Source: Macrostomum hystrix (lineage: Eukaryota; Animalia; Platyhelminthes). From it: 64,000 nucleotides of DNA. Each line of letters opens with the position of its first letter. The stretch's first letter is position 1. The translations under genes were made by a program, and so were the position numbers. The stretch spans positions 9,610,001 to 9,674,000 of the forward strand of contig CATNEN010000003.1 in assembly GCA_950097015.1 (NCBI GenBank), read 5' to 3'. Of the stretch, positions 1 through 41,222 are shown one piece after another. The notes beneath the pieces are model-generated. The model saw only the letters and a program-made list of their open reading frames with translations. It was not told the origin of the DNA and did not search any database.

Positions 1-1
1 G

Positions 2-3000
2 GCCAAGCTGATGAAAGACAACTCGGGTCAATTTTACCTTGTAAGCTCAACTGCTGATGTAACGGTACGCGGTGAGTCGGTGACGGAGGCTGAAGCACAA
101 TACTATCTGGAAAGCTCTGAAAAGAATATTGTGGCTCGAGTGATAAGCGAAGGTAGAGACTTTTCGACTCAAACAATGTCTCAATCACGCGCCACGCAAA
201 AGGAGAGCAGTACACAGAGCAGCAGAAGTGAACTGACTGATGTACAGGCTCAGTATGCCCTGTACTCTTCAAGCAAGGGCCAGACAGTGGAGCTCATCAA
301 ATCTTCAGAGGATTTCTCAACACAGACCCGGATTGCTAGTGTCCACAGTGGTGTCGCGAAGCCGAGTCTTCTGCGGGACAGCGCTGGTCAATACTATCTA
401 GCCAGTCAGGACTCGAAGGTCAAGGTTCAGGGACGAGTCGTCACGGAGTCTGAAGCGCGAATGCACTTAAGCACGTCAGAGAAAAGTATCGTAGCTAGGA
501 TAATTACCGATGTTCGCGATTTCACGACCCAAACTGTTTCTGAAGATGTTGAACAGGTCATAATCGCGGAGAGACAGCAGTACGAGTTGTACTCTGCCAA
601 CAGAGACCTATCTGCTTTAGCAAGCAACAGTGAGGATTTCGCAGTGCAGGTGAGGCATGATTCTGCCGATATGGCCAGCCAGTTCCAACCCAAGCTAATG
701 CGCGATAGCTACGGACAATATTACCTTTCCAGTGCAGATAGCAACTTGATCATTTCGGGCCAGCCAGTATCAGAGACTCAGGCCAGAAGCTACTTGGCCA
801 GCTCAGACAAGAGTATTGTTGCCAGAGTTAGCAGTGAGACTCGCGAATCTACCATGCAAACCGTGCCGAAGACAAAGCCAGAGCTGAAGCAGACTGGAAC
901 ACAGAGTGGCAGCACACTAGTCGAGGTGGATACGCAATACTCCCTCTACTCATCTAGTAAGAGCCTGACGGCGAATGTTATAAAGACATCGGAAGAATTT
1001 GGCACTCAAACTAAGACAAGCCTAAAGGAGAGCACATTCGTCCAGCCAAAATTGATGTGCGACAGTGCTGGACAGTACTACTTATCTAGTGAAGAGTCAG
1101 GGATGATGGTTCGAGGTCAAATTGTAACAGAGTCCGAAGCCAGGCATCACTTGTCGAGTTCCGACAAGAGCATCGTAGCCAAGGTGGTCAGTGAGACCCT
1201 GGACTTTGCCTCACAGACCGCCATTGAGAGCAGTAGCACCAAAATGCGGTCAGCTCGCGGACCACTACGCGACGTTCAAAGTGAATTCGTGTTGTATGCC
1301 TCCGACAAAAATTTGTCGACAGACGTTGCTACTGGTGAGTCCATGGCTGTTTTTCTCCAGACAGTGGAAACACGCGACGAAGGCACTCGCGTTCAGACGC
1401 AAGGAAAATCAGCTAGCGCTCTCGCCGGCTCCAGGGTGATGGTTGATGCCAGCGGGCAATACTTCCTAAAGACATCCAACTCCGCTACTCTTGTTCCCGG
1501 TGTCGTCGCATCTTCATCGGAGGCCAGAGCGGCACTAGAGAGTTCCGACAGCAGAATTGTTGCTAGGGTGTTTGGCGATGGGTTGGACGTCTCATCACAG
1601 ACGACTACAGCTGTCGCCTCAGCCCAAAGCGTCAGTACCACAAGAATGAAAGATGTTAGCACCCACTATGTCCTCATGACCTCATCGCACAATGTTTTTA
1701 GTCAGACAGAAGAAAACACCGCTACAAATTCCATGTGTCATAGTCAGGAAGAAGAGGTTGAAACAATTGTTCAAGTGTCCCAGGCACCGCTTCAGATGGA
1801 AATGACTGAACAGGTACACAGAGACACACAGGTAGCTGCTATGATGCACGATACTCACGCACAATACTTCATAGCCAGCTCAGAAGCATGCACTTCTCAG
1901 ACTGAGAGATTTGAAGCCTCGGGACACGTGCAAGCTCAGGTTGGAATGGAGTCGAGGACAGAGAAAGTGAAGGTCGACACAGCTGACTTCCAGTGTCAAA
2001 CTCATCCAGCAGCAGTTATGAAAGACAGTGCTTGTTCTTTTACTGTTAATAAATCAGTTAGCTTTGGCACACAGACTGTGGTGATCGAGAGTGATACTGC
2101 GAGTCTTCTCGAGTCAGGTTTCCAAACTGAGCGCTCACTTGATGATATTGCTAGAAGCACGCAAACTGAAATTCATGTTGCTAAAAGGCCCGAGTCTCAG
2201 GAAAGTCAGGTTAAAGTTTTAAGGGCAGTGCAAGCTGATCTATCCAGTCAGTTTGAAAGTGAAAACTACGAATTCGGCTTTCATTACCACGCCCAAGGGG
2301 CCGACTTCAGCTCGCAAGCCGCGCCGCAACTGCTTTCTAAGCGAGTGCAGCTTGGAGTTCCGTGGAATTTTTTTACTGACTCCGCTATTCAAACAGAAGA
2401 GTCGTCGTCTGACGAAGACAGCCTAACGGACCACACAGTCAGTAGGTTTGAACAGGACTGCCAAACAATGTTTATCTGGAGCTCCAGTGAAACGCAGACA
2501 GAGCAACTGCTGATTGAGGACACAACCGAGGAGGAAGACATTGAGCAAGAGACGGCCATACAAGTCCTTGCGGTTGATCAACGAGATGAAACAAGTCGTG
2601 CTTGCCAGACGGGCAAAATGAAACAGCGAGATGTCATGTCCGAATACTACGCCGATTCTGAGGACGCTTGCGTTGTCGCCAAAGAAGTAGAAAAAGATCT
2701 AAGGTCGGAATCTGTTCAAGTTGCTGCTGCCATCGATTATGTGGACACAAATTCCAAGGCCAAAGTTGAACAGATGGACGCATCCGCCAGCAAGCGCCTC
2801 TCTTATCAGGACGATAGCTTATTGTTCAACAGCCAGTGTGCCAATTGCAACAGACGTTCTTTAATCGGGAAAATCGATTCGGAGACGCAGTACTGGTTTC
2901 ATCACTCGGATACTAGTGCTCAGTTTGACCACTACAAAAGCGACAAGAGTCTTCAGGTCACGTTTATTGCTGAACCGTTGGCTGTGTCTGAACAAGGCTC

Positions 3001-6000
3001 ACAGGCCGCTGCGCGAAAGGAATTGGCTGATACTGAAGTCAAGGCAATCGACTATGACTACCATAGTCTGCAGGTCGTGTGTCGAACCTACGAGGGCCTC
3101 GTTGCTCGGTTTTCGCAAAAAGTGGCCGACTTAGAAGCTGCTGCTCACAGGGAGCTTTTGGAGCAACGCGTGCGTGCCAGACCGCATCAGAAGGCGAAGC
3201 GAATCCAAAGAGGCACATCAGCTTTCAACCTCATCGAGACGGCTAGCCAGACAGAGGAAGAACAAGAATTCATCCAGGAAGTTCAAGCAGTTCAACTTCA
3301 ATCGATTCCTCAGGTTGAGACGCAAAGTAGAGAGATTCAGACCCAATCGATAATGCAGGATGCTTTTATCAATGTGGATACAACTGAACCAGTTTCTATT
3401 GCGAAGGATACTCGCGATTCCCACACCGAGTCCAATGTGGAAATGCAGGAGATTTCAACTAGCTTTGACGTCACTCAGGTGCACAAGGTGATTCAGTTGG
3501 GAAGTCCGTTCTCTTATCTAAGAGACAATTACTGCAACACTGACCAGGCTGAAGAGATGAAAATACAGGTTCCTCACGTGGAGTCCGCTCCTGCACCTGT
3601 CACGGCTGACGAGGGAAGCCAGTACAATCAGCCAGAGCTGCAAGACGGTAGCATTCAGGTCGACTTGCCAGAGAAGCCTGCTCAATCCAAGCCAGCTTCT
3701 GAAAATGTCAGCGTTGCCCTTCAGTGCCACCAGCCAGCCATGCTGGACAGTGAGACAACATACAGAACTGAATCTGCGAATAAAGTAATTCAGCACGGTT
3801 GCCCGCATTTCCTGACTGTCGATGCCCAGTGCAACACTGAACCTATGGAGCCGACTATTGTTGAGGTTGCGGTGCCAGCCATTGTTAGCCAGCTAGATGA
3901 AAATGTAGGCACACCAGAAATCATCTGGAAATCTAAAGCCATTCAGAGGGGCTGCCCGTCATTCGCCGTAAACAGCGTCGCTAGCAATACTGAGAACTTC
4001 GAGGTTGAAGACTTCATTGATTACGGTGCATTCCAGCAGTATGTAATGCCTGAATCCGCGCGAGCAGCCGAGTACACGGAGGGAGCAGTGAAAGCTGTCA
4101 TGAAGCCAGATAGTCATCGCAAGGCTATTCAGCAAGGATGTCCTTTCGCAATGCTCTTAGAAGCAGGTACTCTTACCGAACCAGACACAGAATTTGTGGC
4201 TCCAGTGCTCGCGCCGAAAGTCGAGTCTGCTGCAGCGACCAAAAAACTCGATGCTGCGACGCAGTGCTTCCAGGATGTAGAAGAATGGGGCGTGCAGGTG
4301 GAACTCGGCAGTACTGCTAGCGAAGTGCCTCTGGCTAAGGCTAAGATTGAATTGGTGGATATTGGAAACCAATACGACGTTGTCTTAGCAAAAAAAGCCA
4401 TTCAGAGAGGTTGTCCTTGGTCAATGAAGTACGAGGCTGAGTGCGATACGACTGGCTTAGAAAGCCCTCTGGTAGATTCTCCATTGAGTCCGAAGAAAGC
4501 CGAAATGGTCGACTGTGGCAATCAGTACGATGTTCAAATGCACAGGAAAGCGATTCAGCGTGGTTGCCCATGGTTCATGACACTGGAGGCGGAAACTAAC
4601 ACGGAAGTAGAAGAAATTTTTGAAGAAATTCAAATGAATCTGCAGAGCACTGAGCCTCTAATAGCAAAAGAAAAAAAGGGCAAAAGCATTCAACACGGAT
4701 GTCCAGCCGCTTACAGGATTGACGTTGCAGTGATGGCAAATGAACCATCAGATGAGTCTCCAAATAATGCCAGAAAACAGTTTGGTGGACGTCGCCTATC
4801 CGATGAGTTCGAAGACTTCGGAACTCAAACCATTGGTGACTTATGCGACGGTGAAGTCCAGTGCAACATCGAGCCGGAGCAGGAGCCTCCAGCTCCTGTT
4901 GACAGCGCTGACGCAGCCTCCGATCCAATCGACATACCACGCCCAGCCAAGCGCGTCCAGCGAGGAGTTCCATTCTCCAAGATCAAGAATGTCGGCACGA
5001 ACACTGAACAGTTTGAAGCGTCAGCCCAGGAAGAGGAAGCGGAGGTACCGCCCTATTGCCCCAAATGGGATATCATGCCTGTGGAGTACGTCACAAAAAG
5101 TAGCGGAACTGGTGTTGAAACTGCGGAAGTTGCCTGCTTAATTACTATCAAGACCTCATCTGTCTACACCAGCTGCGAAATAGATATATGCGATGAATCG
5201 ACGGATGTAATGAAGGACGACGAGGAAACCATACAAGTTGTAAGCTACCGTCCTGTTGAGGCAACGCTTCCTGTTTTCAGTACAGTGTCCTGTCAAACAA
5301 TATCTTTTATGGCAGATAGTTATGGCCAGTATTTTAGTACAGGTGTTCCCTCAAGAACAATCGACTTCGGGAATGAGGCTTGCCAGACCAAAGAAGAAAT
5401 GTACGAGAGTGCCGGTCAGTTCTCAGTCGAGGTTTGTGATGTACTCGTGAAAGTTGATTGGGCACAAGAAACGTCTCAAGACAGCCCGAATCGAAAGTTG
5501 GAGTCCATCACTAGCAGCATGAGCGTAGTAGAGGTTCCTGTGCTGATGAACATCGCAATTCAAACCAGTGCTGAGCAATCTGAAAAGGAGACTGAGAAGT
5601 CTGACAATAAAACCATACAAGAGTACGTTGACACAGTTATGTTCCCAGTCACGCACTACACAGATCCAGCTGCTGAAGTTCTAGATACTCTCATTGTTGC
5701 TAGAGTCGAGATTTGGTCACGAGAGGTTCAGACTATCAGTTTTACCGAAGATTCGGACACGCAGTTCTCGCCAGTTGCTTCAACTCCACGAAAACAGTCA
5801 ATTAGTAGAACAGTAGAAACGTCTGAAATCAATACGCAGACTGAGACTTCCTCCGACGAAGTACAGACTCAAACTATCACTTATTGCGCAGATGCTACTG
5901 TCGGATGCGACTTCGACTTGGAGTTCGATCAGTATCCTAAGAATGCTGGACGATTGCGTGCTGCACCGGAGACACAACTTGAAACTGGCGATCAAGAGAC

Positions 6001-9000
6001 CCAAACGGTGGTTTTCTACGATATAGCCGAATCACAAACTGAAGCCTACAATATCTCAACTGCAGTTCAGTACGTCTTTGATGAAGTCGACTATTTAGCG
6101 CAGCAATCAAGGCTAGAATCAGCCGAAAACAGCGTGCGCCACAGAGCTGAGCAGCGAACTGCTCAAGTTCAAATGAGCTCAGTAGTGCTCAGAGATCGCA
6201 GGTCGCGTTCTCGCTCGAGGAAACGTGAAACGGAGGCAGTCTTTACTCAAACTGAGTTCGAAGAAGAGGAGACGATCGAATTGTTCGACGCACCTCTTCA
6301 AGAGGCCTTGCCTCCTAGAGTGGAGACAAATGATCAGTCTGAAAGCACTCACGTCGAGCTGGAAGATTGTAGCACAACGTATAACATTGAATTGCGCGAG
6401 TCATCGTTTAAAACGGAAGTACACCAGAAAGCCAGCGAAACAATGACAGGTCACTGCACCGATGAAGCGCAAGTTCAGTATAACCCTGAAGGCTTGTGCG
6501 ATTCATTTGTTGTTGCCCATCTTGAAGAGACAAATTTAATGCAAATTGTGCCCCATGTCAAGTTAGCTGTTTCTAGTACAACCGAGACATCCATTCAAAC
6601 GGATGGCTCTCTGGCTGACATGTATGTACAGTTTGAGGCTGAAGCAGAATCGCTAAGGACTATAGTAAAAACTATCGATGCTTTTACAATGACAGTGGCA
6701 CACTCGTTTGAGGAGCTAAAGACGCAGACAGAACAATATACAACCGCATCAGAAGTGCAGTTTGACCCCAACGAGATGAACGACAGATCAACTAACACCG
6801 AGGAAGTAGTCACCCAGACGGCAGATTTAAGTTCTAAATCGCAAATACAAACGCGCGAGGCATCGTCAATGACGACTACTGACAAGGCTGACTCCATGGC
6901 TCAGTACGATGCTGAAGCCGAGGCAGAAAAACCTGAAACGTGCGCAGCTGCAATGAAGTTTGCGACCGAAACATCAACTTCCGGTGCCCAAACCGAAGTC
7001 TACAGCGCTGATGCCGAAACAGAATGTGATCGAGAAGAGGAGCAAGTCGAAGAGCAGTTTCAAACACAAGTAGTAGTGATGCAAGAGTCGACACCACGAA
7101 ACAATGAGCACTGCCAAACAGAAGGTGTTATGAAAAGCTGTTCTACTGATTATCAGATGGAATTAGAAAGTCAAAGTGTGAAGGCTGGTGCTGAAGTGGA
7201 AAATTGCACTGTCAGCATAAAGTTTTCGACTGAAAAATGTTCAGTCGGAGCTCAAACTGAAGTCTACAGTACTGATGCTGAAACAGAATGCGATCGAGAA
7301 GAGGTGCAAATCGGAGAGCAGCTCGAAACTCAAGTAGTAGTGATGCAAGAGTCGACACCACGAAACAATGAGCACTGCCAAACAGAAGGTGTTATGAAAA
7401 GCTGTTCGACTGATTATCAGATGGAATTAGAAAGTCAAAGTGTGAAGGCTGGTGCTGAAGTGGAAAATTGCACTGTCAGCATAAAGTTTTCGACTGAAAA
7501 ATGTTCAGTCGGAGCTCAAACTGAAGTCTACAGTACTGATGCCGAAACAGAATGCGATCGAGAAGAGGTGCAAATCGAAGAGCAACTCCTGCATCAAGTG
7601 GCTGTGACAGTAGAGTCCATGCCACGACGTAGCGAGTTCTGCCAAACAGAGAGTACCATGGAAAGTTCTGCGACAGAATATCACAAAGAATGTGACAGCC
7701 AACTTGTGAAAGCTGGCGTCGAAGTTGTCCGTGAAATGTCGGAGCAGAGTACTCAGTGTAATTCACAACTTGCTGACGAAAAAACTGAAACTGAAAGCTA
7801 TACAGCGGACTTTGGTACTCAGGTCACCTTGGATATTACTGACCATGTTGTGTCTCGTGGTAGTAGCCAAAGCCAGACGGACTCCATCATGAAGAATTCA
7901 GAAACAGAATTCGAGAGTGTAGTGATGCTTCATGCCACCGCTAGTGCTCGAGCTGAGGGATCTGATGAAGGAACACAATGCGATGCGCGTGACCAGGCTG
8001 AGGCTGAAACAAATACTGCCAACAGCATGCAAGATTACGGCAGTCAGGCTGAAGTGCATTTTGCTCAGTCAAGTATGCAGGTGGATCAGCAGAAGTATGA
8101 GAGCGCTTCCATTCAGGCGAAAATCGAGTCTGCTGATGTGGAAACTCAGTACGAGCAGGACGAAGAGGTTATTTTGCCAACCCAAATCATTATTGAAGAG
8201 GCAGAGCCACGCCTGAACGCCGAGTGCCAAACGGACAAGATTGCTGAGGTGTCTGAGAAAGTGACACAATGTGACGAATGCGTCCGAATCGAGACTGGAT
8301 CGAATCCTGCCAAATTCATGCAGGATTTTGGCAGCCAGATGGCAGTGATTTCTGTTCAAATCGGCACACAGATTGATCAACAGAAGTCTGAAACAGTGGG
8401 CGTTCACAAAGACCTGACATCTATTGACGCTTGGATGTCGTGTGCTGTTGAAACAGACGAGGCTTTGATAAAAACGGAAATTCAAAATAAGTCTTCAATG
8501 CGAGATTCAATCGTCCAGTTCGATATTGAAACTACTCAGAGCGCTTCAATCACGACGAAAATCGAGTCTGCTGATGTGGAAAGTCAGTACGAGCAGGACG
8601 AAGAGGTGGTTATGCCTACTCAGATCACCATTGAAGAATCAGTGCCTCACATCGAATCAGGAAGCCAAACAATCAACTTTATGGAAAATGCCGCGACGGA
8701 ATTTGAAAGAAAAATGCAAGATGGATATGCTCAAGCAAAGGAACAGTTTGTTGAAAGTTTCGATAAATTTTCACAATGCGATGCAAAGGAGCAGCGAGAC
8801 AGCTGGTCAGATCCTGTCAGATTCATGGAGGACTACGGATGCCAGCTGCAAGTGAGCTCGGAATCCCTGAAGACACCGACTGCTGAAGCTTCCACTCAAA
8901 GCCAAGTGGAAACTGCCGATTCAGAAATCCTGACTCATTTAGATCAGAAGAAAGTCACAGAAGACGTTGCTATTCAAGTCAAGTTTGAAACAGCTAGCGA

Positions 9001-12000
9001 GTGTGTTGAAGTCGGAACTCAGTCAAGAAGCTCTATGGTGGATGCGTCAAGCGACCTTCAAGTTGACACAGCAGACAAGTTCACTCAAAGCAGGCAACTG
9101 ATTACCGATAGTGTCAGTGTAGCCGCCAACTTTAAAGAGGCCAAACAGTGCCAAGAAATCGGTGTCCAATCAAGAAGCTTTATGATCGAAGAGGGCTCAC
9201 AACTTTCAATCATTTATAAACAAGTGGAGACTCAGATTGACTTCATAGTAGCAGAGACAGCATATGTCAATGCTCGCACGGAAATGAAGACTAGCGGCAT
9301 GCAGTACATCCATGAGTTAAGTGAGTCTGCAACCCAGGTGCACATCAAAGTGTCCGAAGCTGCCACACAAAGCTCTGCTAAGCAACTCTGGGAAAGCTCA
9401 GTTTGTGTCAATACCATTCAGGGAAAAGAGACAACAGATCGTGGTGCCCAGAGTCGAATGGAACTACTTGAATTTGGCTCTCAGCATGGCTTGAAATCTG
9501 TCGACAAAGACACCGTGACTGACAGCAAGCTCTTCAGTGATAGCAATGTCCAGGCGAATTTCGTCCCCGAGGCAAAGCAGGTGACGAATCAAACTACGCA
9601 GTCCAGACAGCGTATGGTTGATGAAGAGTCACAGCTGTTTGTCAGCACCAAGGATGGCTGTACTCAGTTTGAGGCTGCTGTTAGATGCAACGCTGCCGTC
9701 AAGATCGCTGAATTTAAGATCACCCAGACAGTCGGCTGTCAGAGTGTGATGGAGATGTCAGACAAGAATGCGCAGTGCTCAACTCGACTCATTGATTCCG
9801 AAAGCCAGATGACCGTAGACAGCTCTACGGGATCGATGAAGAGCATTCGCATTGAGCAGTTGCTTGACTCAGTTTCAACTAAATTTGCATCAATTGATAT
9901 TGGCACGGAGACACGATTGCGTGGAGTTGAGGCTGCCACGGGTTACACTATGGAGACAGTCGAAAGTGCAATTAGCGCAATCAAAATGCCAGTTAACAGC
10001 AGTATGCAGATAGTTACAGTGCATCAAAAGGACGCCGGCTCTCAAACGGCAGATGAAGAACCAGACATAGAAGAGGAAATCACTCAGCACACTTGTCAGC
10101 ACGAGACTGTTGAAATACAGGAGCAAACACTACAAAAGTCAGAGCAGCCAACAGGCATTGAAGAGCTGGTGCGCTTTGGACCAATTGTCAGAAATTCCAG
10201 CTCTCAACATGAGCAGGAACCATCGGTTCGATTGGTTACGTCGGTGACACCAAACGCCACCGTTTCTAGCATGCAGTTCTCTTACTCAATGGCCGTTGCT
10301 TCCAGTCAGACAAGTTTGAGACCAACGTCTGACTCAGCGGCACTTTTCCAACCCGAAGAGTTGGTGCCTAAAGCACTGTCTTTTGTTTCGGAAGTCGAAA
10401 CTACGCAGCAGGCGTGTCAGGCACGCCAGGAAACAACAGACGGTTTCGCTCGAACACGCACTGAAATGGTTTCAATAGAGACCTCGTACAAGCAGGAGTT
10501 AGGTGACGGTTTCGTACGTACATTCGTTGATTCTGTTGATGCTCACGTCAAGCAGCTTCGAATTAAATCTGAAAGTGCTGACATCAGTACAGAAACTGAG
10601 GTCAAGGTGAATTCGGTTCAAACATCGTTCAATTTGATAATGCAAGACGCAGAAATGCAAATCGATAAAGAATACGTTAACAGCGACGTGCATGTGCGTG
10701 AGGCAGTGGAAGAGAAAGCCTTGCTGGTCGTATCGGGTCTGTCTGTGCGAGGACCAACTAAATCCACTGAAACATCTCACGATCTTTCGTTGCATGAAGC
10801 TGCAACTCAAGCATTGAGCGAGACTTCATATTCAAGTGTTTGTGTGTCACCCGCCTTGGCAGAGACGCTTGACACTGGAGTGGAGACTTCCCCAATCATG
10901 CAGTCCAGTGAGACAGCATTCGATGTGTTTTCAAACTCAATCGGGATCTCGTGTTCGACTCAATCAATGAGTGCGGAAACCCAAGTCAAATTTGCGACCA
11001 GAGAAGCAGAAACAATGACAGAGTCTGAGATTAAGAAAGAGTATTTCGACAGCGATGTGCGATACGCCGAGAGTAAGAGCACTTGTGATGTGAGCACAGA
11101 GCATGTACGCAATGAGCACTCGGCTGAAACACAGTGCATCTTTGAGATGAAAAACAGCGCAATGCAAGTTGTACGAGAATTCGCTGACGGCGAGGTCCGT
11201 GCGATTGAACAAAAAGCACAGACGATGGATGTGTACTCGGAGACAGCTCCAAGAATGAGCAATGTTGAAACATTTTACAGTGCTATTGTGGCGTCTGTCG
11301 AGTGTCAGTCAAGTATTGACCATGCTGATGTCGGAGTCACTGCTCATGAAGCCAAGCCTGAGAAAATGGACTCTAGTTGCTTGACCATTGCGGCGGACGT
11401 AGTCGAAATAGCTACTCAAACAGAACTGGCAGTTAGTTCAGAAGAATCTGTGATCGCCAAAGTCAATACCACATCTGTTGCCACTTTCTATGCTATTTCT
11501 TTGAAAGACAGTGCGACTCTCGCCAGCCGCTCTTACGAAGATGCCGTCTTGAAGATTTCAGAGGCTGCCATCGAGCGTGCTGATGTCGCTAGTGAAACGA
11601 AGATAACTGTTCGAGGGGTGTCTGTGCAGGTATTTGTTGACTCAGATACTTCCAGCGTTTGGGTTGCAGAGGAAATTGCTGCAACGGAGCATGCGACAGT
11701 TCAGACTGCTCAGAGATTGACTTCATCGGAAACAGAGTACAAGTTGGTTGTAAAGAATGCGGAATGCCAGACGTCTGAAAATGTTGTTGAAAAGGTCGAT
11801 TCGACTGTCAGAGCTGTAGTTGCTTCGGCCTCCATTCAGACGATGTATAACATCAGCGTGCAGGATAGCTCTTCACAAGCGATTATTAAATATGAAGATG
11901 CTAACGCATTAATAAAAGAGGCAGTCATTGAGATGGTTGAAGTTGCATCGGAGACAGCCCTGCGTTTAGAGTCAAAAGAAACATTGTGCAGATTGGAAAT

Positions 12001-15000
12001 ATGTGACGCTGTTGTTAGAGCCTTTACGCCGGCAAGAGATATGACGATCCAGGCAGAATCTGAGAAGATACAAACTTTAGAAGCATTCACAGAGACAAAG
12101 AACCGATTGCGAGATGTCGAAACAGATTTTAGTGTTCAAGTTAGCTTTGCAAACGTTGAGGCACTTGTGACCACTCAGAATGACAGTGTTTCAATCAAGG
12201 AAGTGATTTTGGAAAAGAAAGATGCTTCTACTGCAACAGAAGTTCGTTTAAAACCTGTTGAAGTACAAGCGTGTCCAGATTACACCGAATCCGCTGCTCT
12301 AGTACACGAAAAAGCTGTCGAGAAGACTGAAGCCGCAACAGAAACCATGAGAAGAATGGTGTCAGTTGAATCATCCTATTCTGTTGCCGTTCAGTCAGCA
12401 GAAACATCTTGCGTTGCAATAAGCTTATTCGATATGGCTACACAGGTTAAACAGGAAAGTTTTGAAGCGGATATGCAGACGGATGAAGAAGTAATTGAGT
12501 CTGTCAGCTCACACGTCCAAATGAGAGTAGAAATGCAGTCCACTGACTCGCACTATGAGACTCCACTGGCAACTAGAGATTCGCAGACCAAGAGCGAGAC
12601 TCAAGACGCAAATGTTCACGCAGTGGAATTCCGGCCAGAATTCCAAGAGAGCGGCATCAAGATTACGGCAACAGTGAAATCCGTGGAAACTTCGTATAGC
12701 TTGAGAACGCAGGACGTGTTTACTCAGATCTCCACTGAAACAGAACAGTCTCATGTAAAATATGCCGAAGAAGTTGCTGAAGTGGAGAAATCTGACGCCT
12801 CAACTTCATATAGCCTTCAAACTAATCACAGGGAAGTGCAGGCCTCGCGTGATCATAGCGATACCGGCGTGCAGATTAAGGAAGCCAAGACGGAAACAGC
12901 TGAGATCGGCATCAGAGCCGAAGTGAGCACAAAGTCGGTGGAAACCTTCTACGCGCTGAGTCTAAGAGATGTGGACTCACAGGTTTCAACTGATCGCAGC
13001 GACGCGAGCGTCAGAATTGTTGAAGAGTCTATAGAGACAGCTCAGAGCAGTTTCAAGACGCAGAGTAGTCTCGTCTCAACTTTATCACTGTACAATGTTC
13101 GGACTGAGCACAATGGATCACAAGCATCTAGAGAGTTCTCTGATGGAGCTGTGCAAGTTCAAGAGGCTAAAGCGGAGATGACAGAGAGCGGAATCGTTGT
13201 CTCGCCCGTTTATAAAATAGATATCGAAGTTCAAACTTCTGTGATACACGAGACCTCTTGGCTGCGTGTAGTGGAGCCCGTGCCCGACAAGCTCGATGCA
13301 TCTTCTCAAGATCTCAGTCAGTACGAAAGCGGTTCTGTGTGCATCCAGGAGGTAAAACCTGAGATGCTGGATGCCAGCTACAAGTTTCAAGCGCACTGTC
13401 GCTCCGTGGAGACATCCTTCGAGATTCGACAGAGCGACATGTCTTCGCAGGTTTCGGTGGACCTCAGCGATGGAAACATTTGGATTAAGGAGCAGCTTGA
13501 ACGCGTACACAGCAGTGTGAAAGCAGCAGAGGCAGTGAAAGCAACCGCTGAAAAGTCTGTTGAAGTGAGAACTCAAACCGACTCAGCTGGTGTAAAATAC
13601 CACGTGCCTACTGACGAATGCGTCACTCAGGTGTCCACAGAATACTGCGACTCAGACACAACCCTAGTGGAGGTAATCGAAAAAGTTGAAGTTCAAAAGC
13701 AGGAGGCAAAGCTGCAGTCAAGGTCCGTGGCAAGTTTCTATGAGGTGCGAGTTGAAAGCAGAGGGGCGCAGGCCTCAAAGGAGTATGATGACGTCACTGT
13801 TTTGGCCAGAGAAGAGAAGCCGGAGCTGATTCATGACAACGCCAAAGCAACTGTTTCCACAAAGACAACGGACACGCACTACAATTTGAGTCTGAATGAC
13901 GGTCACGCCCAAGTAAGCACCGAGCTAGCTGAAGCTCATGTTAAGATCGAAGAGAAGATCAAACTCGTAGAAAAGCTTGATGCAGCCACATTGTGCAACG
14001 GCCCAATTATGGAAGACGCTGCTTTGTACGTGTTTTCAAAACAAAGAGACGAAAGTAGCCAAGCGACAGAGACTAAGTCTGAATGTATGGAGAGCGGCAT
14101 CAAAGCAAGGACTGCTATCATGTCCGACTCTCAAGCGCAGATTGCAACTTTGACATCTGAATCTGGCATTAGTTACGCCGAGAAGGCAGTTATCATAGAG
14201 AAACATGACGCATCAACGTTGTACAGCATTCGAAACAATGACAGCGAAGTTCAGGTCTCAACGCAGAATTGCGAGTCAAGCGCGCATGTTCAAGAGTCGA
14301 AGGTTGAGACAGTTCAAACAGGTATCAGGGCAAGTGTTGACACGAAATTTGCCGAAACAGAATACACACTGAGACTCACTGACGAGCAATCCCAGGCCAC
14401 CACTGATGTGTGCCATGCAAGTGTCAGAAATGCTGAGGAATCAATTGAGATGGCTGAGAGCAGCTTCAAGTCGCAGACGAATCTAGTATCGACTTTGTCA
14501 CTCTATAATATCCGAACAGAGCACAGCGGAGCGCAGGCTTCCAAGGAGTTCGCTGACGGAGCTGCGCAGGTGCAGGAGGTCAAAGCTGAGGCGACTGTTA
14601 GTGGACTGAAATTCGAAGCGAGTGCTAAATCTGTTGAGACCGAGTACTCAATTAGACTAGCCGATGAGCAGTCTCAAGCATCGACCGAGATGGCTGCTGC
14701 GAATGTTCGCAAAGCTGAGGAATCTGTACAGACTGTGGAGAGCAGTTTTAAGACGCAGAGAAGTATGATTTCAACTCTGTCGCTGTACAGCATCAGGACC
14801 GAACACGGACAGTCGCAAGCCTCAAAGGAATTCCATGATGAAGCTGTTTTGGTCCATGAGGCGAAAATTGAGGCTGCAGAAAGTGGAATTCAGGTTTCAA
14901 CTGAAATCCGTGAGTCCTGTGCAAGCTTCAAGGAAAAAGTTTCGGTGATTGAGAAATCTAACGCATCCACTCAGTATGACATCGTGATTCGGAAAGAAAA

Positions 15001-16956
15001 TTGTGAAGTGCAGGCTTCAGCGGAGCGGGCTGATGGCAATGTTCAGATAATGGAGCAAAAGACAGTAGCCATTCAAAGTGACGTCAAAGCAGCTGTGAGT
15101 ACAAAATCCGTGGACACCACCTACAGCATCCGCGTTTTAGACGAAGAAATTCAAGCTTCTAAGGAGTATAGCGAATCGGCAGTCCGAATTCAGGAGGAGA
15201 CTGCAATCACAGAAACAGCGGATGCTTCGACTTTGTACAGTCTGCGCACATGCTATGGCGAAGCTCAAGTTTCTAAAGATTATGCCGAGAATGGCCTGCA
15301 AATAAAGGAAGCCAAGATTGAGTCCATCCACAGTGGCATTAAGACTGAGGTAGGTGCCAGATCAGTGGAGACCGCGTATTCCTTGCGTCTATCTGACCAA
15401 CTGTCTCAGGTGTCAATAGATATGAGCCACGCGAGCGTCCGTGTCGCTGAAGAACATGTTCAGACATTGGAAAGTGGTTTCAAGACACAGAGCAATTTGA
15501 GGTCAACCGATTCGCTGTATAATGTTCTAACCGAGCATAGCGCCTGTCAGATTTCAAAAGAGTTCGTCAATTTCGGTATTCACGCCAAAGAGGACCGTCA
15601 GTCAAAGCTTGTGGCGGTTGAAAGCGGCATGAAAGCGAAGGTCGCTGCCATCGCCAACAGCCAGATGCAAGCGACAGTTCGTCTGGTAGGCTCAAACATA
15701 CACTTCCAAGAGAAACCGGTTCTAAAGTTGCACACCGGGACAGAGACGATGCCAGATGTTTCTGTGTCAAAGGCAGCTTTTAAATCGGACTCTCAAAGCA
15801 AAGCTACTCAGATTGTGAAGGGTGATTTTATTCAAATTGAAGAATTCGCCATGCAACAAACGACTCAAAGACTTGAGTATGCCTTGCCCAAACTCAACAA
15901 GTCAAGCCAGACAGACGAACTACTATCTTTAATCTCTGGTCAACCCGAGGGACATCAAGAGCTGAGGGAAGCGGGAGTGACCTTTGTGGCTCCATCGAAG
16001 GTGGTCAGCTGCCAGATGAGCGTGCCGGTTGTAGAGAACGGAATCTTCCGAACTACTTCTAATCGCACACTATCAACCCAGGTCGAAGCGCTGGACATTC
16101 CTGACGCTCCTGTTCTTTCTCCTACGCGCCGACACGGCAGCCATCGCCATTCAATGTCTAGAGATACTGGCAGTCTAATTGAACTCAAATCGAAAGACCA
16201 GATTTTCCGGTACGCTCCGAAATTCGCCAACGCCCTTGTGAGCACTTCGTCGCGAGCGAGAGACACAGGCTCCGCTCACTCTCAGCTTCCACCTGCAGGA
16301 GACCAATCTCAGGAGAAGCTCCTGACCGGTGCTAGAACCTCGGATGTATTCCCGCCGCGCCACGGCTTTGTGGTAACGGGTGCCAAGCCAAACCACTCGG
16401 AGGAGGCGCAGGTACGTCAGCTGACTGGAAGACGCGACGCATCGTGCGGCACGGACACTCGAGGCCTGGTTGACTCGGCGCATAAGCAGATCCGAGTGCG
16501 CCCAGATTGCTACGAAGCCAGTGTGCGTACTGCTTCTGCTTCAGATGATCTGTGGCAGCAGCAGCAGCCGCAGCAGCAGCAGCAACAGCATCAGGAGCCA
16601 AGGCGCACCCTTGAATCTGTACTCGCCATCACCGATGCGGATGTCATCGACCGCGTTCGGTCCAGCGGTTCTCCGCAGCTGCGATCCGCCCTGCTGCGGT
16701 TGCTTCGACCGCCGACTTATGACGCCACAGTCAACGCCAAACCTGCCGATGCCGCACAACTGGAGCTTCAGCAGCCGCAGATGCTGCAGCAGTACCAGCG
16801 ACCATCACCAACGTTTGCCTCCTACGTTCAACGACATCGAATTGAGGAGGCTAGCTGCCAGACAGACCGACTGACCGAAGCCGACTTTGAAGCCTGGGCA
16901 TCGCAGAGCCTTGGTCGACCAGTTCGCATTGGTCGCGAGCTGCCAGAAGAGTCGCG
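2..16956 (+). CDS. Giant exon (5' truncated by window) of a >5,700-aa acidic, low-complexity repeat protein with very many TQT/xQT (LC8-binding-like) motifs
   Basis: Stop-free frame of ~17 kb. The frame is already open at nt 2 (GCC AAG CTG ATG = AKLM, matching the internal repeat start PKLMRDS), so the ATG at 11 is probably internal. Donor CG|GTGAGT at 16956/16957 lies just before the ORF's TGA. Confidence 0.9.
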
Positions 16957-17042
16957 GTGAGTTCTTTAAATATTAATTACTTTTTCACCTGATTTATGAT
17001 TCTCGAGACAATTCTTAAAATAAATAACTTGTCTTCATTCAG

Positions 17043-17093
17043 CGGCATTGAGCTATTATACGTGCCAAGCAGGAGCCACCTGTACAAGAGCCG
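17043..17093 (+). CDS. Penultimate 51-nt exon of the giant gene (GIELLYVPSRSHLYKS)
   Basis: ttcattcAG acceptor (17041-17042), GTAAAC donor at 17094; phase 2 to phase 2, keeps the frame open. Confidence 0.75.
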
Positions 17094-17405
17094 GTAAACT
17101 AACACGCTGCTAAATCAGATTTTTATTTAAATATATTTAAGTATTTTTTATCCAGCGAACCAATTGAATGCTTTTTAACTATTGGCTATCATGCACAGAG
17201 TCGATATGCTAAAGTTGGCAATCATAGTGCACTTTTGACCTATCTATGAGTATTATACGCTCGTGTATAATTGATAGTAACCGACTTTCTAATTGTTTAC
17301 TTGCAATTTCTTATTGAAAAAGTGTATTCCTACGAATTACTTCGATACACGATAATAGTTGAGCGAAAATCTGTTCCACTATTTTCGCTTCAAACTCGTC
17401 CGCAG

Positions 17406-17619
17406 ATCGCAGCCGGGACAACAGCAGATTCTGGAGATGGACATCGACAAGGTTGTGGATCCGGAGAGTCGACTGCCGCTAAAGCCAGCCGTTGCCATCC
17501 GGCTGCAGGTTCTGACTAGCGACTGTGGTCACTACAAGCTGGCTGATGGCTCCTTCATCACCTCAGCGGAGGCTGTTGAGCGCGGATTGATAGTTTTGCG
17601 ATCAACTCGCCGGCATTGA
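17406..17619 (+). CDS. Last exon of the giant gene; plakin/plectin-repeat-like motif pair (VVDPESRLPLKPAVAIRLQVL / ADGSFITSAEAVERGLI)
   Basis: cgtccgcAG acceptor (17404-17405), phase 2 consistent, TGA at 17617-17619; resembles plectin repeat consensus IIDPxTGxxLSxxEAxxRGLI. Confidence 0.75.
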
Positions 17620-21538: not shown

Positions 21539-21915
21539 CTCAGAGACAGACCCTCAAGGACAGACACTCAAAGACAGACACTCAAAGACAGATACTCAAA
21601 GACAGACACTCAAAGACAGACACTTAAAGACAGACACTCAAAGACAGATACTCAAAGACAGACACTCAAAGACAGACACTCAAAGACAGATACTCAAAGA
21701 CAGACACTCAAAGACAGACACTTAAAGACAGACACTCATAGACAGACACTCAAAGACAGATACTCAAAGACAGACACTCAAAGACAGATACTCAAAGACA
21801 GATACTTAAGGACAGATACTCAAAGACAGATACTCAGAGACATACTCAAAGACAGACACTCAAAGACAGATACTCATAGACAGACACTCAAAGATACACT
21901 TTTAGACAGACCTTA
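21539..21915. repeat. 14-bp minisatellite (CTCAAAGACAGACA)
   Basis: direct tandem repetition; explains ORF 21536..21916. Confidence 0.95.
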
Positions 21916-22559: not shown

Positions 22560-25500
22560 ATAAATGAGAAATAGGGAAGAGGGTAGTAGATCGAGGAGAA
22601 ATAGGGAAGAGAGTAGTAGATCGAGGAGAAATGGGGAAGAGAGTAGTAGATTGAGGAGAAATGGGGAAGAGAGTAGTAGATCGAGGAGAAATGGGGAAGA
22701 GAGTAGTAGATCGAGGAGAAATAGGGAAGAGAGTAGTAGATCGAGGAGAAATAGGGAAGAGAGTAGTAGATCGAGGAGAAATAGGGAAGAGAGTAGTAGA
22801 TTGAGGAGAAATGGGGAAGAGAGTAGTAGATCGAGGAGAAATGGGGGAGAGAGTAGTAGATCGAGGAGAAATGGGAAAGAGAGTAGTAGATCGAGGAGAA
22901 ATAGGGAAGAGGGTAGTAGATCGAGGAGAAATAGGGAAGAGGGTAGTAGATCGAGGAGAAATAGGGAAGAGAGTAGTAGATCGAGGAGAAATAGGGAAGA
23001 GAGTAGTAGATCGAGGAGAAATAGGGAAGAGAGTAGTAGATCGAGGAGAAATAGGGAAGAGAGTAGTAGATCGACGAGAAATGGGGGAGAGAGTAGTAGA
23101 TCGAGGAGAAATAGGGAAGAGAGTAGTAGATCGAGGAGAAATAGGGAAGAGAGTAGTAGATCGAGGAGAAATAGGGAAGAGAGTAGTAGATCGAGGAGAA
23201 ATGGGGGAGAGAGTAGTAGATCGAGGAGAAATAGGGAAGAGAGTAGTAGATCGACGAGAAATGGGGGAGTGAGTAGTAGATCGAGGAGAAATGGGGGAGA
23301 GAGTAGTAGATTGAGGAGAAATGGGGAAGAGAGTAGTAGATCGAGGAGAAATGGGGGAGAGAGTAGTAGATCGAGGAGAAATAGGGAAGAGAGTTGTAGA
23401 TCGAGGAGAAATAGGGAAGAGAGTAGTAGATCGAGGAGAAATAGGGAAGAGAGTAGTAGATCGAGGAGAAATGGGGAAGAGAGTAGTAGATCGAGGAGAA
23501 ATAGGGAAGAGAGTAGTAGATCGAGGAGAAATAGGGAAGAGAGTAGTAGATCGAGGAGAAATGGAGGAGAGAGTAGTAGATCGAGGAGAAATAGGGAAGA
23601 GAGTAGTAGATCGACGAGAAATGGGGGAGTGAGTAGTAGATCGAGGAGAAATAGGGAAGAGAGTAGTAGATCGAGGAGAAATAGGGACGAGAGTAGTAGA
23701 TCGAGGAGAAATAGGGACGAGAGTAGTAGATCGAGGAGAAATGGGGGAGAGAGTAGTAGATCGACTAGAAATGGGGGAGAGAGTAGTAGATAGAGGAGAA
23801 ATAGGGGAGAGAGTAGTAGATCGACTAGAAATGGGGGAGAGAGTAGTAGATAGAGGAGAAATAGGGGAGAGAGTAGTAGATCGACTAGAAATGGGGGAGA
23901 GAGTAGTAGATAGAGGAGAAATAGGGGAGAGAGTAGTAGATCGAGGAGAAATGGGGGAGAGAGTAGTAGATCGAGGAGAAATAGGGAAGAGAGTAGTAGA
24001 TCGACGAGAAATGGGGGAGTGAGTAGTAGATCGAGGAGAAATGGGGGAGAGAGTAGTAGATTGAGGAGAAATGGGGAAGAGAGTAGTAGATCGAGGAGAA
24101 ATGGGGGAGAGAGTAGTAGATCGAGGAGAAATAGGGAAGAGAGTTGTAGATCGAGGAGAAATAGGGAAGAGAGTAGTAGATCGAGGAGAAATAGGGAAGA
24201 GAGTAGTAGATCGAGGAGAAATGGGGAAGAGAGTAGTAGATCGAGGAGAAATAGGGAAGAGAGTAGTAGATCGAGGAGAAATAGGGAAGAGAGTAGTAGA
24301 TCGAGGAGAAATGGAGGAGAGAGTAGTAGATCGAGGAGAAATAGGGAAGAGAGTAGTAGATCGACGAGAAATGGGGGAGTGAGTAGTAGATCGAGGAGAA
24401 ATAGGGAAGAGAGTAGTAGATCGAGGAGAAATAGGGACGAGAGTAGTAGATCGAGGAGAAATAGGGACGAGAGTAGTAGATCGAGGAGAAATGGGGGAGA
24501 GAGTAGTAGATCGACTAGAAATGGGGGAGAGAGTAGTAGATAGAGGAGAAATAGGGGAGAGAGTAGTAGATCGACTAGAAATGGGGGAGAGAGTAGTAGA
24601 TAGAGGAGAAATAGGGGAGAGAGTAGTAGATCGACTAGAAATGGGGGAGAGAGTAGTAGATAGAGGAGAAATAGGGGAGAGAGTAGTAGATCGACTAGAA
24701 ATGGGGGAGAGAGTAGTAGATAGAGGAGAAATAGGGAAGAGAGTAGTAGATCGAGAAGAAATAGGGAAGAGAGTAGTAGATAGAGGAGAAATAGGGAAGA
24801 GAGTAGTAGATAGAGGAGAAATAGGGAAGAGAGTAGTAGATCGAGGAGAAATAGGGAAGAGAGTAGTAGATCGACGAGAAATGGGGGATAGAGTAGTAGA
24901 TCGAGGAGAAATAGGGAAGAGAGTAGTAGATCGAGGAGAAATAGGGAAGAGAGTAGTAGATCGACGAGAAATGGGGGATAGAGTAGTAGATCGAGGAGAA
25001 ATGGGGAAGAGAGTTGTAGATCGAGGAGAAATAGGGAAGAGAGTAGTAGATCGAGGAGAAATGGGGGAGTAGTAGATCGAGGAGAAATAGGAAAGAGAGT
25101 AGTAGATCGAGGAGAAATAGGGAAGAGAGTAGTAGATCGAGAAGAAATAGGGAAGAGAGTAGTAGATCGAGAAGAAATAGGGAAGAGAGTAGTAGATAGA
25201 GGAGAAATAGGGAAGAGAGTAGTAGATCGAGGAGAAATAGGGAAGAGAGTAGTAGATCGACGAGAAATGGGGGATAGAGTAGTAGATCGAGGAGAAATAG
25301 GGAAGAGAGTAGTAGATCGAGGAGAAATAGGGAAGAGAGTAGTAGATCGACGAGAAATGGGGGATAGAGTAGTAGATCGAGGAGAAATGGGGAAGAGAGT
25401 TGTAGATCGAGGAGAAATAGGGAAGAGAGTAGTAGATCGAGAAGAAATAGGGAAGAGAGTAGTAGATCGAGAAGAAATAGGGAAGAGAGTAGTAGATAGA

Positions 25501-26705
25501 GGAGAAATAGGGAAGAGAGTAGTAGATCGAGGAGAAATAGGGAAGAGAGTAGTAGATCGACGAGAAATGGGGGATAGAGTAGTAGATCGAGGAGAAATAG
25601 GGAAGAGAGTAGTAGATCGAGGAGAAATAGGGAAGAGAGTAGTAGATCGACGAGAAATGGGGGATAGAGTAGTAGATCGAGGAGAAATGGGGAAGAGAGT
25701 TGTAGATCGAGGAGAAATAGGGAAGAGAGTAGTAGATCGACGAGAAATGGGGGAGAGAGTAGTAGATCGAGGAGAAATGGGGGAGAGAGTAGTAGATCGA
25801 GGAGAAATGGGGGAGAGAGTAGTAGATCGAGGAGAAATAGGGAAGAGAGTAGTAGATCGAGGAGAAATAGGGAAGAGAGTAGTAGATCGACGAGAAATGG
25901 GGGAGAGAGTAGTAGATCGAGGAGAAATGGGGGAGAGAGTAGTAGATCGAGGAGAAATGGGGGAGAGAGTAGTAGATCGAGGAGAAATAGGGAAGAGAGT
26001 AGTAGATGGAGGAGAAATAGAGAAGAGAGTAGTAGATCGAGGAGAAATGGGGGAGAGAGTAGTAGATCGAGGAGAAATGGGGGAGAGAGTAGTAGATCGA
26101 GGAGAAATAGGGAAGAGAGTAGTAGATGGAGGAGAAATAGAGAAGAGAGTAGTAGATCGAGGAGAAATGGGGGATAGAGTAGTAGATCGAGGAGAAATGG
26201 GGAAGAGAGTAGTAGATCGAGGAGAAATAGGGAAGAGAGTAGTAGATTGAGGAGAAATGGGGGAGAGAGTAGTAGATCGAGGAGAAATGGGGAAGAGAGT
26301 AGTAGATGGAGGAGAAATAGGGAAGAGAGTAGTAGATCGACGAGAAATGGGGGAGAGAGTAGTAGATCGAGGAGAAATAGGGAAGAGAGTAGTAGATTGA
26401 GGAGAAATAGGGGGAGAGTAGTAGGTCGAGGAGAAATGGGGGGAGAGAGTAGTAGATCGAGGAGAAATAGGGAAGAGAGTAGTAGATCGAGGAGAAATAG
26501 GGAAGAGAGTAGTAGATCGAGGAGAAATAGGGAAGAGAGTAGTAGATCGAGGAGAAATGGGGGAGAGAGTAGTAGATCGAGGAGAAATAGGGAAGAGAGT
26601 AGTAGATCGAGGAGAAATAGGGAAGAGAGTAGTAGATCGAGGAGAAATAGGGAAGAGAGTAGTAGATCGACGAGAAATGGGGGAGAGAGTAGTAGATAAA
26701 TGAGA
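22560..26705. repeat. 30-bp purine-rich minisatellite (TCGAGGAGAAATAGGGAAGAGAGTAGTAGA), ~4.1 kb, with higher-order duplications
   Basis: exact 30-nt period; source of spurious ORFs 22371..26833. Confidence 0.97.
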
Positions 26706-27579
26706 ACTAGGGGAGAGAGCCAAAAACTTGGAACCACGTGCCTCCAGCGCAAGCAGCGGTACAGGCATAGGTGAAGCGACAAATAATTACCGTGAGGTAT
26801 GTTTTCGAATCGATCAAGCATAAGAATTGACACGGAAAATTAGCATTAGCTCGACTGGTTTAACTTTTGTCTCAGATCGCTAGCAAATATTTTATATCCC
26901 TCAGTCTAACTGTGATCCCATCGAAAAGCAAGGCAGTAAACGAGAAAATTGACAAATGAGAATCTGTCCTAGCAACCTCCTAGATCCCCTAATTGTCCAT
27001 CAATAAATGACAAATAAATTACCGATTTAATTCTAAGCATAGACCGGACTCCAATGCAGGTTTATAAGTCTATATGGAATGGGTTAGAAAATTGATTGAC
27101 ACTGAATGTGTCCAACTCTATATATCTCTCACACTTTCCACAGAGCATTTTTCACTTCTCCATATCAAATCGAGATCGTTTTTGCTTTTCGTCCACAGTT
27201 TTAATGTAAACGCTTCTATTTTTCTACGGTTATATAGCAAATGAACTATTTGGGAGAAATTTTGTGGACTAGGATAAGAGATTGCGTGGAGGGCATACAC
27301 TCCAGGGATTTCTATATCAGTTGCAACCAGTCAAATAAAATGAGTTAACGAGATACGAAATTAACGATTTTAATAAGTCAGAGTTAATATTTCTTGAGGA
27401 AACCTAATATTTTCCTATACTAGAATTGGAATAAGGCTTAGAAAGTGTTTTATTGCTTCTACTGTAGCTCTGAGGGATTCGTGGAGAAAACTGAAATTCG
27501 AGTCAAACATCGATTTCATTCTTCTGTAGAAAAAAAGTAAAGCAAATATTATAGAGATGAGACAGTGGAGGAGACTAAA

Positions 27580-33960: not shown

Positions 33961-34607
33961 ATCTCGGCCACGTAAATTAGCTCGTATATTTGAAAAATGA
34001 CAGCAAGCATTTAAAGCAGTGCCAAGACAAGAAATTACGAGTCAAAGCTGTTTGCTAACTTTGATCATTAAGATTGATAGACTAGATTCACAGTCAGTGA
34101 CCCAGATACTCATCCAATAGCTTTGTACATAATCTGTTCAGTCCATTCTAATAGGACATTATTCGATTCTTCATTGTCTAAAAATCAAGTGTTCTTCTTT
34201 CATAAAGACACAAATTTTATCAAATGACTGGACTCCTAATATTTGACGTCGGCATAAACTATTGAAAATCTACCCCAACCTAAATATTTTAGTGAGGGTG
34301 AGTGGGAGAATGGTTAATGCGTTTGCCTTTCGCACTAAGGTCCCTGAGCTCGAGCTCGCGGCGAGGCCACATTAATTTGGGGGCTTGTCGTGCAATTTAC
34401 GCCCTTGAGGGCCAACCTCCAAGGCACAGTGAGATTGTACACTGCCTGACGATGAGAAAGTCAGGGCAGATGTACACACCTGTGTGCATGTGTCAGAATT
34501 GCCTCCTCGCTGGCTGCGAGTCTAGTGTCACCAAATGTTGTGCCATTGCCCGCAGCCCTCCTGCAATTATCATTATTAAATAATTTAGTTTCTAATCATT
34601 TTTAAAC

Positions 34608-41199: not shown

Positions 41200-41222
41200 A
41201 CTGGTCCGGTGAGGCGACAAAC

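Follow-up and report, generated by a model that had tools for sequence, protein, structure and literature searches.

A transcribed giant plakin gene of the flatworm Macrostomum hystrix with a tail of orphan repeats enriched in LC8-like motifs

The stretch of Macrostomum hystrix DNA analysed here (G000:C3:9610001-9674000), referred to below as the window, is 64,000 nucleotides long, belongs to a genome assembly of 220 Mb in 42 contigs, and opens inside the giant tail exon of a plakin gene. A preliminary description of this DNA had reported a giant open frame at positions 2 to 17619, encoding a disordered chain that would act as a multivalent scaffold for the dynein light chain LC8. The frame is real and even larger than reported, but it starts upstream of the window, its continuous part stops at 16957, and position 17619 is reached only through a putative splice. 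In frame 2 of the plus strand, the window is open from nucleotide 2 to 16957 (5,652 codons), up to an in-frame TGA at 16958-16960. The same frame extends 5.2 kb upstream of the window edge and measures 7,384 codons from stop to stop. The exon starts at position 4889 of the upstream DNA stretch (L004), which is window position -5111, giving a total of ca. 22,068 nt and 7,356 codons. Full-frame residue 1733 corresponds to window residue 1. The parts of the gene that fall in the window are as follows (a slash marks the splice site).

1-16956, plus strand: portion of the giant tail exon that lies in the window, read in frame from nucleotide 2, supported by the open frame, by RNA contigs and by collinearity with the Macrostomum lignano protein PAA75311.1.
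16957-17405, plus strand: putative last intron, read from the sequence, with donor G/GTGAGT, acceptor tccgcag/A and a fitting phase.
17406-17619, plus strand: putative 71-codon terminal exon, an open frame with a fitting splice phase, ending with TGA at 17617-17619.

Four public runs from one study were used to evaluate transcription. The contigs of these runs sum to 42-47 Mb each and leave out introns and, thus, derive from RNA. Every sampled word of window positions 2-4000 was found in the four runs. In addition, contigs of 13.7 kb, which judged by their length are expected to reach about window nucleotide 7,100, joined L004:1192-1554, 2921-3159, 3998-4435 and 4889 onwards across three GT..AG introns with the frame kept. 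The exon at L004:2921-3159 encodes a plakin-type SH3 domain (SH3_10, PF17902; E 8.5e-13), the best of the 12 such loci in the genome. With tblastn, the first 444 residues of PAA75311.1 were placed on six exons that precede the giant exon. In a separate comparison with solved structures, residues 108-318 of this head matched the plakin domain of desmoplakin (3R6N, E 2.7e-12) and plectin (3PE0, E 7e-6). These results demonstrate that the gene is a transcribed plakin, in which the head, a plakin domain of ca. 444 residues made of spectrin-like repeats that enclose an SH3 domain, is spliced to a 22-kb exon; the exons were searched singly, and the whole protein is estimated at ca. 7,900 residues. 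The remark of the preliminary description that no globular domain is recognisable does not hold for the gene, whose upstream exons encode the plakin domain; in the tail, too, a small folded unit is predicted for each repeat of ca. 115 residues (see below). Since splicing, expression and conservation were all seen, the possibility of an artefact or a pseudogene was ruled out. Within the intron before the giant exon, many unrelated RNA contigs touch a short dispersed repeat at L004:4500-4700 (window -5500 to -5300), where the summed depth was 112-312 as compared to ca. 20-45 on the exons.

At the 3′ end, the in-frame TGA lies within a perfect donor sequence at 16957, and a phase-matched acceptor is present at 17405; splicing between them would add the terminal exon listed above. 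In the unspliced alternative, the frame ends at the TGA, and an AATAAA follows at 17019. Searches of Pfam and the PDB with the putative terminal exon gave no match at E values of 10 or below, and the genome contains no paralogue of it. The resemblance of this exon by eye to a plakin repeat was likewise unsupported by these searches. No rod or GAS2-type exons were found downstream in the rest of the window.

Further modules of plakins were sought as well. Plectin repeats (PF00681), which many but not all plakins carry, matched contigs C39, C2 and C1 in a genome-wide search, with no match at the giant-tail locus; the 113 matches of the spectrin repeat (PF00435) across the genome did not include any on C3 near 9.6 Mb; and Pfam detected no family on the giant exon at E values up to 1. 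Neither a coiled-coil nor a spectrin rod was found at the locus in these Pfam and PF00435 searches, which included no dedicated coiled-coil predictor. On the minus strand of C39 (9406500-9413600), canonical plectin repeats, nearly identical to each other, form an array in open frames of 1,217-1,316 codons, ca. 45 kb from spectrin-repeat matches at C39:9.359-9.362 Mb; this array may belong to a conventional spectraplakin-type gene of M. hystrix.

A search of 1.84 billion proteins with a profile of the repeat gave one real relative, a cluster of M. lignano proteins (PAA53624.1, PAA83991.1 and PAA75311.1) named 'hypothetical' at NCBI and, automatically, 'Desmoplakin SH3 domain-containing protein' at UniRef. 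Four other weak hits of the profile were unrelated repeat proteins (one named a bacterial cadherin-domain protein, one a TIG-repeat protein by Pfam). Homology searches with the N-terminal 600 and the C-terminal 1,150 residues of the window part found nothing within the length ranges searched. The search for flatworm homologues suggested in the preliminary description thus led to a collinear orthologue: PAA75311.1 is collinear with full-frame residues 29-3514 and ca. 70% identical over residues 29-2800, and the species comparison covers the window up to about window residue 1,780. The orthologues are present in databases solely as uncharacterised proteins, and no paper was found on them, on flatworm plakins of such a type or on a link between LC8 and plakins. 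A 39-residue unit (…IIKVDTT.PVEKEVS.SEVKARVEMQELSTGFGVAH…) recurs ca. nine times almost unchanged at ca. residues 3050-3400 of PAA75311.1, where the identity to the M. hystrix protein falls to 42% and the alignment coverage drops. Therefore, the repeat blocks expand independently in the two species.

On self-comparison, the tail proved to be a mosaic: its diverged tandem repeats have unit lengths of 35, ca. 115, 88 and 47/94 residues. The blocks are arranged as follows, where strong anchors are TQT plus [TVI]Q[TV] motifs.

Full-frame residues 380-910, upstream of the window, plus strand: 35-residue units (self-comparison).
Full-frame residues 911-2440, plus strand: units of ca. 115 residues with a 229-residue super-repeat (self-comparison).
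8-367, 368-694, 695-1051, 1052-1435 and 1436-1840, plus strand: five of the twelve clear modules of ca. 115 residues (alignment A1).
1841-2125, plus strand: degenerate copy of the ca. 115-residue unit, directly after the modules at 8-1840.
2126-6055 (full-frame residues 2441-3750), plus strand: weakly repetitive, increasingly acidic stretch with the densest strong anchors (13.7 per 1000 residues).
6056-8305 (full-frame residues 3751-4500), plus strand: 88-residue repeats (42 + 46), some copies near-identical; the most acidic block (ca. 21% Asp plus Glu).
8306-10555 (full-frame residues 4501-5250), plus strand: degenerate weak repeats, poor in strong anchors (4 per 1000 residues).
10556-15805 (full-frame residues 5251-7000), plus strand: 47/94-residue repeats of the form ...E-T-x-Y-x-L-x-L-x-D-x-x-S-Q-A/V-S..., with a peak of the hydrophobicity spectrum at period 3.6.
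15806-16956 (full-frame residues 7001-7384), plus strand: C-terminal stretch, non-repetitive by sequence, with a short poly-Gln run.

The 35-residue unit corresponds to the C-terminal third of the ca. 115-residue unit. Hidden Markov models (HMMs) iterated from the ca. 115- and 94-residue units detected 34 and 46 copies in the exon, respectively, as compared to 0-2 in reversed or locally shuffled sequence, and each of them also matched the other's block. Therefore, the tail blocks probably belong to one diverged repeat family. Since a direct comparison of the ca. 115-residue and 47/94 profiles with hhalign was weak (probability 7.7%, E 0.0045), this relatedness rests on the cross-hits of the HMMs as compared to their reversed and shuffled controls. 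The profile of the ca. 115-residue unit (A1) matched no other gene in the genome. In composition, the tail is rich in Ser, Glu, Ala, Val, Thr and Gln and very low in Pro and Gly; its acidity climbs mid-tail to 21% Asp plus Glu, and FoldIndex scored 36% of the windows as unfolded.

The ca. 115-residue unit was modelled with AlphaFold2 (AF2) using its 12 internal copies as the alignment, which gave a mean predicted local distance difference test (pLDDT) score of 66 and a predicted template modelling (pTM) score of 0.44. Residues 1-50 were predicted as strand-strand-helix-strand at pLDDT 77-89, with a further strand at residues 81-87. The first DFxTQT motif lay at the edge of a segment with a pLDDT below 50 and the second inside such a segment, and D-x-x-x-Q made a turn ahead of strands 9-12 and 81-87. 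Alignment A1 and this model together suggest a module plan in which a small alpha/beta unit is followed by two D/E-F-x-T/S-Q-T/V motifs. When a pair of 94-residue units was modelled, the top result was entirely helical at pLDDT 61, the four remaining models reached 26-34, and the pTM was 0.24; the hydrophobic periodicity of 3.6 residues in the 47/94 block also gives a hint of helices. Comparison of the ca. 115-residue model with PDB folds gave nothing above Z 2.3 (Foldseek, VIA-align), profile A1 had no match in the PDB, and the ESM Atlas yielded no usable match. With one partly folded unit and an unconfident 47/94 model, the tail is, as far as these predictions go, neither a confident self-folding rod nor simply a disordered chain. 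The disorder assumed in the preliminary description would suit the low-pLDDT linker around the second motif, but the FoldIndex value and the predicted fold of part of the unit speak against a uniformly disordered chain. A confident self-folding structure, which that description had named as speaking against an LC8 scaffold, was not found by AF2.

All 12 hexamers listed in the preliminary description (DFSTQT and others) are present in the tail. TQT occurs 19 times in the exon (17 times in the window) as compared to 4.5 ± 1.9 expected in the exon from composition-shuffled sequence, which served as the control throughout; [TVI]Q[TV] other than TQT occurs 45 times (40 in the window; expected in the exon, 17.8 ± 4.0), and weaker variants 132 times (104 in the window; expected in the exon, 77.6 ± 8.9). 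When the window part was shuffled separately, the counts were 17 as compared to 3.6 ± 1.8 for TQT and 57 as compared to 17.7 ± 4.1 for [TVI]Q[TV]. The proposed enrichment is thus borne out, while two stronger statements are not: the 64 strong anchors in 7,356 residues (ca. one per 115, median spacing 78 residues) do not saturate the chain from end to end, being absent from the 35-residue block (530 residues) and sparse in two other blocks, and of the 'many dozens to hundreds' of sites, the dozens hold but the hundreds do not. One motif of each type in the ca. 115-residue modules is given as an example.

155-178, plus strand: first-type motif RDFSTQTM (positions -5 to +2), aligned with KDFSTQTA in M. 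lignano.
308-331, plus strand: second-type motif EDFSTQTR, aligned with EDFATQTK in M. lignano; inside the fragment 257-376 used for complex prediction.

The binding rules of LC8 were taken from Jespersen et al. 2019 (PMC6607443) and applied as regular expressions. A binding peptide lacks Pro ahead of the anchor, avoids bulky hydrophobic side chains at -2 and is sparingly charged; a flank counts as favourable when -4 can form hydrogen bonds, when -3 is basic or when +2 is Pro, Asp or Glu; and the buried -1 and +1 positions favour a mid-sized hydrogen-bonding or hydrophobic residue (PMC6607443). The exclusion rules (with at most 3 charges) were passed by 60 of the 64 strong anchors. Among the passing anchors, 39 had at least one favourable flank as compared to 8.1 ± 2.8 expected, and 7 had two as compared to 1.4. 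Being tandem-repeat copies, these sites cannot be regarded as independent of one another. Table S4 of the same work lists 79 binders and 32 non-binders, and the validated binders include AEFSTQTP and ANYGSQTE of Bassoon and LDVSSQTD of WWC1 (PMC6607443). The tail motifs EDFSTQT, EEFGTQT and LDVSSQT are close to these, LDVSSQT being the first seven residues of the WWC1 octamer; since validated binders resemble the tail motifs in this way, an aromatic residue at -3 is tolerated. It should be noted that many TQT peptides fail to bind LC8 (PMC6607443).

The same glutamine motif was also found in forms of another kind. Across the exon, Asp is 3.5-fold enriched four residues before Gln (124 Gln residues), and Tyr is 3.4-fold enriched directly after Gln, the strongest enrichment of any residue at that position. 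The D-x-x-x-Q skeleton also heads the best-conserved segments, D-S-S-G-Q-Y-Y-L and D-V-x-T-Q-Y-x-L-Y-S-S, and in the 35-residue block the homologous copy takes the form D-A-S-L-Q-A-S.

Canonical LC8 is encoded in the genome by three genes without introns, with full-length Dynein_light matches at 146-149 bits. One of them, an open frame on the minus strand (L018:1498-1764), encodes an LC8 of 89 residues that we take to be nearly identical to human DYNLL1. With at least 36 Dynein_light matches in the genome, the expansion of dynein-light-chain-like families anticipated in the preliminary description is apparent. A complex of two chains of this LC8 (L018:1498-1764, minus strand) with two copies of a 40-residue tail fragment (window 257-376) was predicted with a score of 0.24 as compared to a mark of 0.34, which gives no verdict.

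In the region compared between the species, all nine TQT motifs are kept in M. lignano, eight exactly and one as VQT, and 11 of 16 strong variants are kept. Column identity was 0.9-1.0 in the fold core and the D-V-x-T-Q-Y-x-L-Y-S-S segment, 0.67-0.83 and 0.42-0.75 in the two DFxTQT motifs, and 0.1-0.4 in the linkers. From these sequence comparisons, the DFxTQT motifs are constrained, but the main constraint lies elsewhere.

At six of the 11 other SH3_10 loci in the genome, a single frame that stays open for 990 to more than 2,400 codons follows within 1-7 kb. Since stretches of 10 kb were examined, most of these lengths are lower bounds; five of the six exceed 1,750 codons. The six loci are the following.

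C34:5587600-5597599 (L024): plakin-head locus with giant tail.
C7:1126600- (L025): plakin-head locus with giant tail.
C38:25059900- (L026): plakin-head locus with giant tail.
C39:10035780- (L028), minus strand: plakin-head locus with giant tail.
C38:23111600- (L029): plakin-head locus with giant tail.
C38:23132100- (L030): plakin-head locus with giant tail.

Plakin heads with giant orphan tails thus seem to form a family that has expanded. Only the tail at C34:5.59 Mb (L024) is rich in TQT (16 in 2,259 residues), and most of the others have almost none. Judged by sequence, the common theme of the family is the giant tail and not TQT.

The rest of the window holds purine-rich satellites, a channel gene or exon, a retroelement and a glycosyltransferase frame. 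The satellites, with units of 30 bp (139 copies), 14 bp (26 copies) and 19 bp (39 copies), explain a GC skew of 0.73-0.83 and a spurious minus-strand frame of 1,465 codons.

22566-26719, 21539-21894 and 27591-28322: purine-rich satellites.
34605-35951, minus strand: DEG/ENaC channel gene or exon of 449 codons (ASC, PF00858; E 8e-24).
41070-45427, plus strand: Ty3/gypsy-type retroelement with a gag-like DUF7041 frame followed by a 1,129-codon pol (protease, reverse transcriptase, RNase H and integrase).
47720-49108, plus strand: glycosyltransferase frame of 463 codons (DXD sugar-binding region, PF04488; E 4e-12).

Plakins are universal linkers of cell junctions and the cytoskeleton, and coiled coils, spectrin repeats or plakin repeats ordinarily make up their rods and tails. 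We favour, at slightly better than an even chance, the reading that the gene encodes a lineage-specific giant plakin whose head docks like other plakin domains and whose modular acidic repeat tail forms a very long tether or rod. The head would dock at a junction or a membrane-cytoskeleton site. The acidic tail, rich in Ser, Thr, Gln and Val, would replace the coiled-coil or spectrin rod of conventional plakins; in it, flexible linkers would connect small folded units and stretches of strand or helix. The TQT-like hexamers would be one variant of a pervasive D-x-x-x-Q motif that marks a turn or the start of a strand in the repeat; since the motif excess would then follow from the repeat consensus, no LC8 is needed to explain it. 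A subset of ca. 20-60 sites, best in the ca. 115-residue units and the stretch that follows them, could still recruit LC8. Several facts weigh against this reading. The tether role is argued from membership of the plakin family, and the 3′ end of the gene model is putative. The fold predictions, made from shallow internal-repeat alignments, are only moderate (pLDDT 66 and 61), and the picture of beads and linkers is provisional for this reason. Furthermore, eight of the nine TQT motifs are exact in M. lignano, as compared to ca. 0.34 per site expected at 70% identity, and the kept anchors sit in low-confidence linkers as docking motifs would.

It is possible, though on the whole unlikely, that the tail is a multivalent LC8 scaffold, in which some tens of the 64 sites bind LC8 dimers and zip two parallel tails into a duplex, thereby supplying the dimerisation for which conventional plakins use a coiled-coil rod. 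The 3- to 5-fold enrichment of the anchors over shuffled sequence, which persists after the flank rules, the frequent Asp at -4 as in good binders, and the likeness to the Bassoon and WWC1 peptides (PMC6607443) are consistent with such a scaffold. So are the position of both ca. 115-residue-unit motifs in low-confidence linkers, the retention of the motifs in M. lignano, the three intronless LC8 copies within an expanded Dynein_light family and the failure to find a coiled-coil or spectrin rod at the locus. However, candidate sites number dozens and not hundreds, and their median spacing of 78 residues, with folded or ordered segments between them, differs from the situation in ASCIZ or Nup159, where linkers are short. 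Among the Gln motifs, the best-conserved ones carry Tyr or Phe at +1, and in the 35-residue block -1 is Leu and +1 is Ala; these residues are outside the preference of the buried positions of LC8 (PMC6607443). Even the best TQT sites seldom have Pro, Asp or Glu at +2, their acidic context disfavours binding under the high-charge rule, and many TQT peptides are non-binders in any case (PMC6607443). Besides, most paralogous giant tails lack TQT, the fold core is more conserved between the species than the motif columns, and the chain is not uniformly disordered, given the FoldIndex value, the low Pro and Gly content and the predicted fold of part of the unit. With the complex prediction giving no verdict, LC8 binding is a candidate property of the tail. 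The LC8 scaffold of the preliminary description thus retains the enriched and conserved anchors and the presence of LC8 genes, but the unfit Q-Y, Q-F and LQA copies and the scarcity of TQT in paralogues count against it. Its more specific form, a plakin whose coiled-coil rod was replaced by an LC8-zipped duplex with tens of TQT-type sites holding two chains in register, is more doubtful still.

A self-assembling fibrous rod appears improbable. In such a rod, the repeats would pack against one another or against a second chain to make a continuous beta-rich or helical filament, with the glutamines as ladders or caps and without a partner. The very low Pro and Gly and high Val, Thr, Ser and Ile contents, the strand-like alternation in E-T-x-Y-x-L-x-L and T-Q-Y-x-L-Y-S-S, the 3.6-residue periodicity of the 47/94 block and the D-x-x-x-Q at predicted hairpin turns would suit it, but AF2 gave no confident extended fold (pTM 0.44 and 0.24; four of five 47/94 models below pLDDT 35), and no solved fold was matched. 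Since envoplakin and periplakin are cross-linked into the vertebrate cornified envelope, the plakin head and the regularly spaced, conserved and presumably exposed Gln residues might by analogy mark cross-link sites of a transglutaminase substrate that fix the plakin in a resistant cortical layer, but the motif has no known transglutaminase consensus and we consider this highly improbable.

A flatworm genus appears to have expanded plakin heads on giant single-exon tails of orphan repeats, a different route to a very long cytolinker. Should LC8 dock on the tail, even partially, the protein would surpass every known LC8 client in size and offer a natural test case for how multivalent LC8 binding makes a rod of a flexible chain; as an LC8-zipped duplex, it would be the most multivalent client by far and a micrometre-scale cytolinker peculiar to macrostomid flatworms. 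The question is directly testable because M. lignano is transgenic, amenable to RNA interference and equipped with a clear orthologue.

As compared to the known LC8 clients (ASCIZ/ATMIN, Nup159, Chica/FAM83D, KANK1 and Bassoon), the tail shares repeated TQT-type anchors, in which -4 is frequently Asp; certain copies come close to identity with validated octamers, and some lie in predicted flexible linkers. In contrast to these clients, its candidate sites, seen in sequence and prediction, are several times more numerous but widely spaced (median 78 residues) with ordered-looking segments between them, and many homologous copies have anchors outside the LC8 preference. With the paralogous plakin-head genes of M. 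hystrix, the gene shares an SH3_10 head followed by a giant single frame, while the repeat units differ. With the plakin family (desmoplakin, plectin, periplakin/envoplakin and Shot/MACF1/VAB-10), it has in common the N-terminal plakin domain with an embedded SH3 domain. The tail, however, carries no plectin repeats (PF00681), spectrin rod (PF00435) or other Pfam family; it consists of ca. 7,400 residues of orphan repeats found in Macrostomum only, and the canonical plectin repeats of the M. hystrix genome lie in other genes (C39, C2). In Shot and VAB-10A, the plakin-repeat tail is encoded by a giant exon, and the tail of the M. hystrix plakin is likewise carried by one giant exon.

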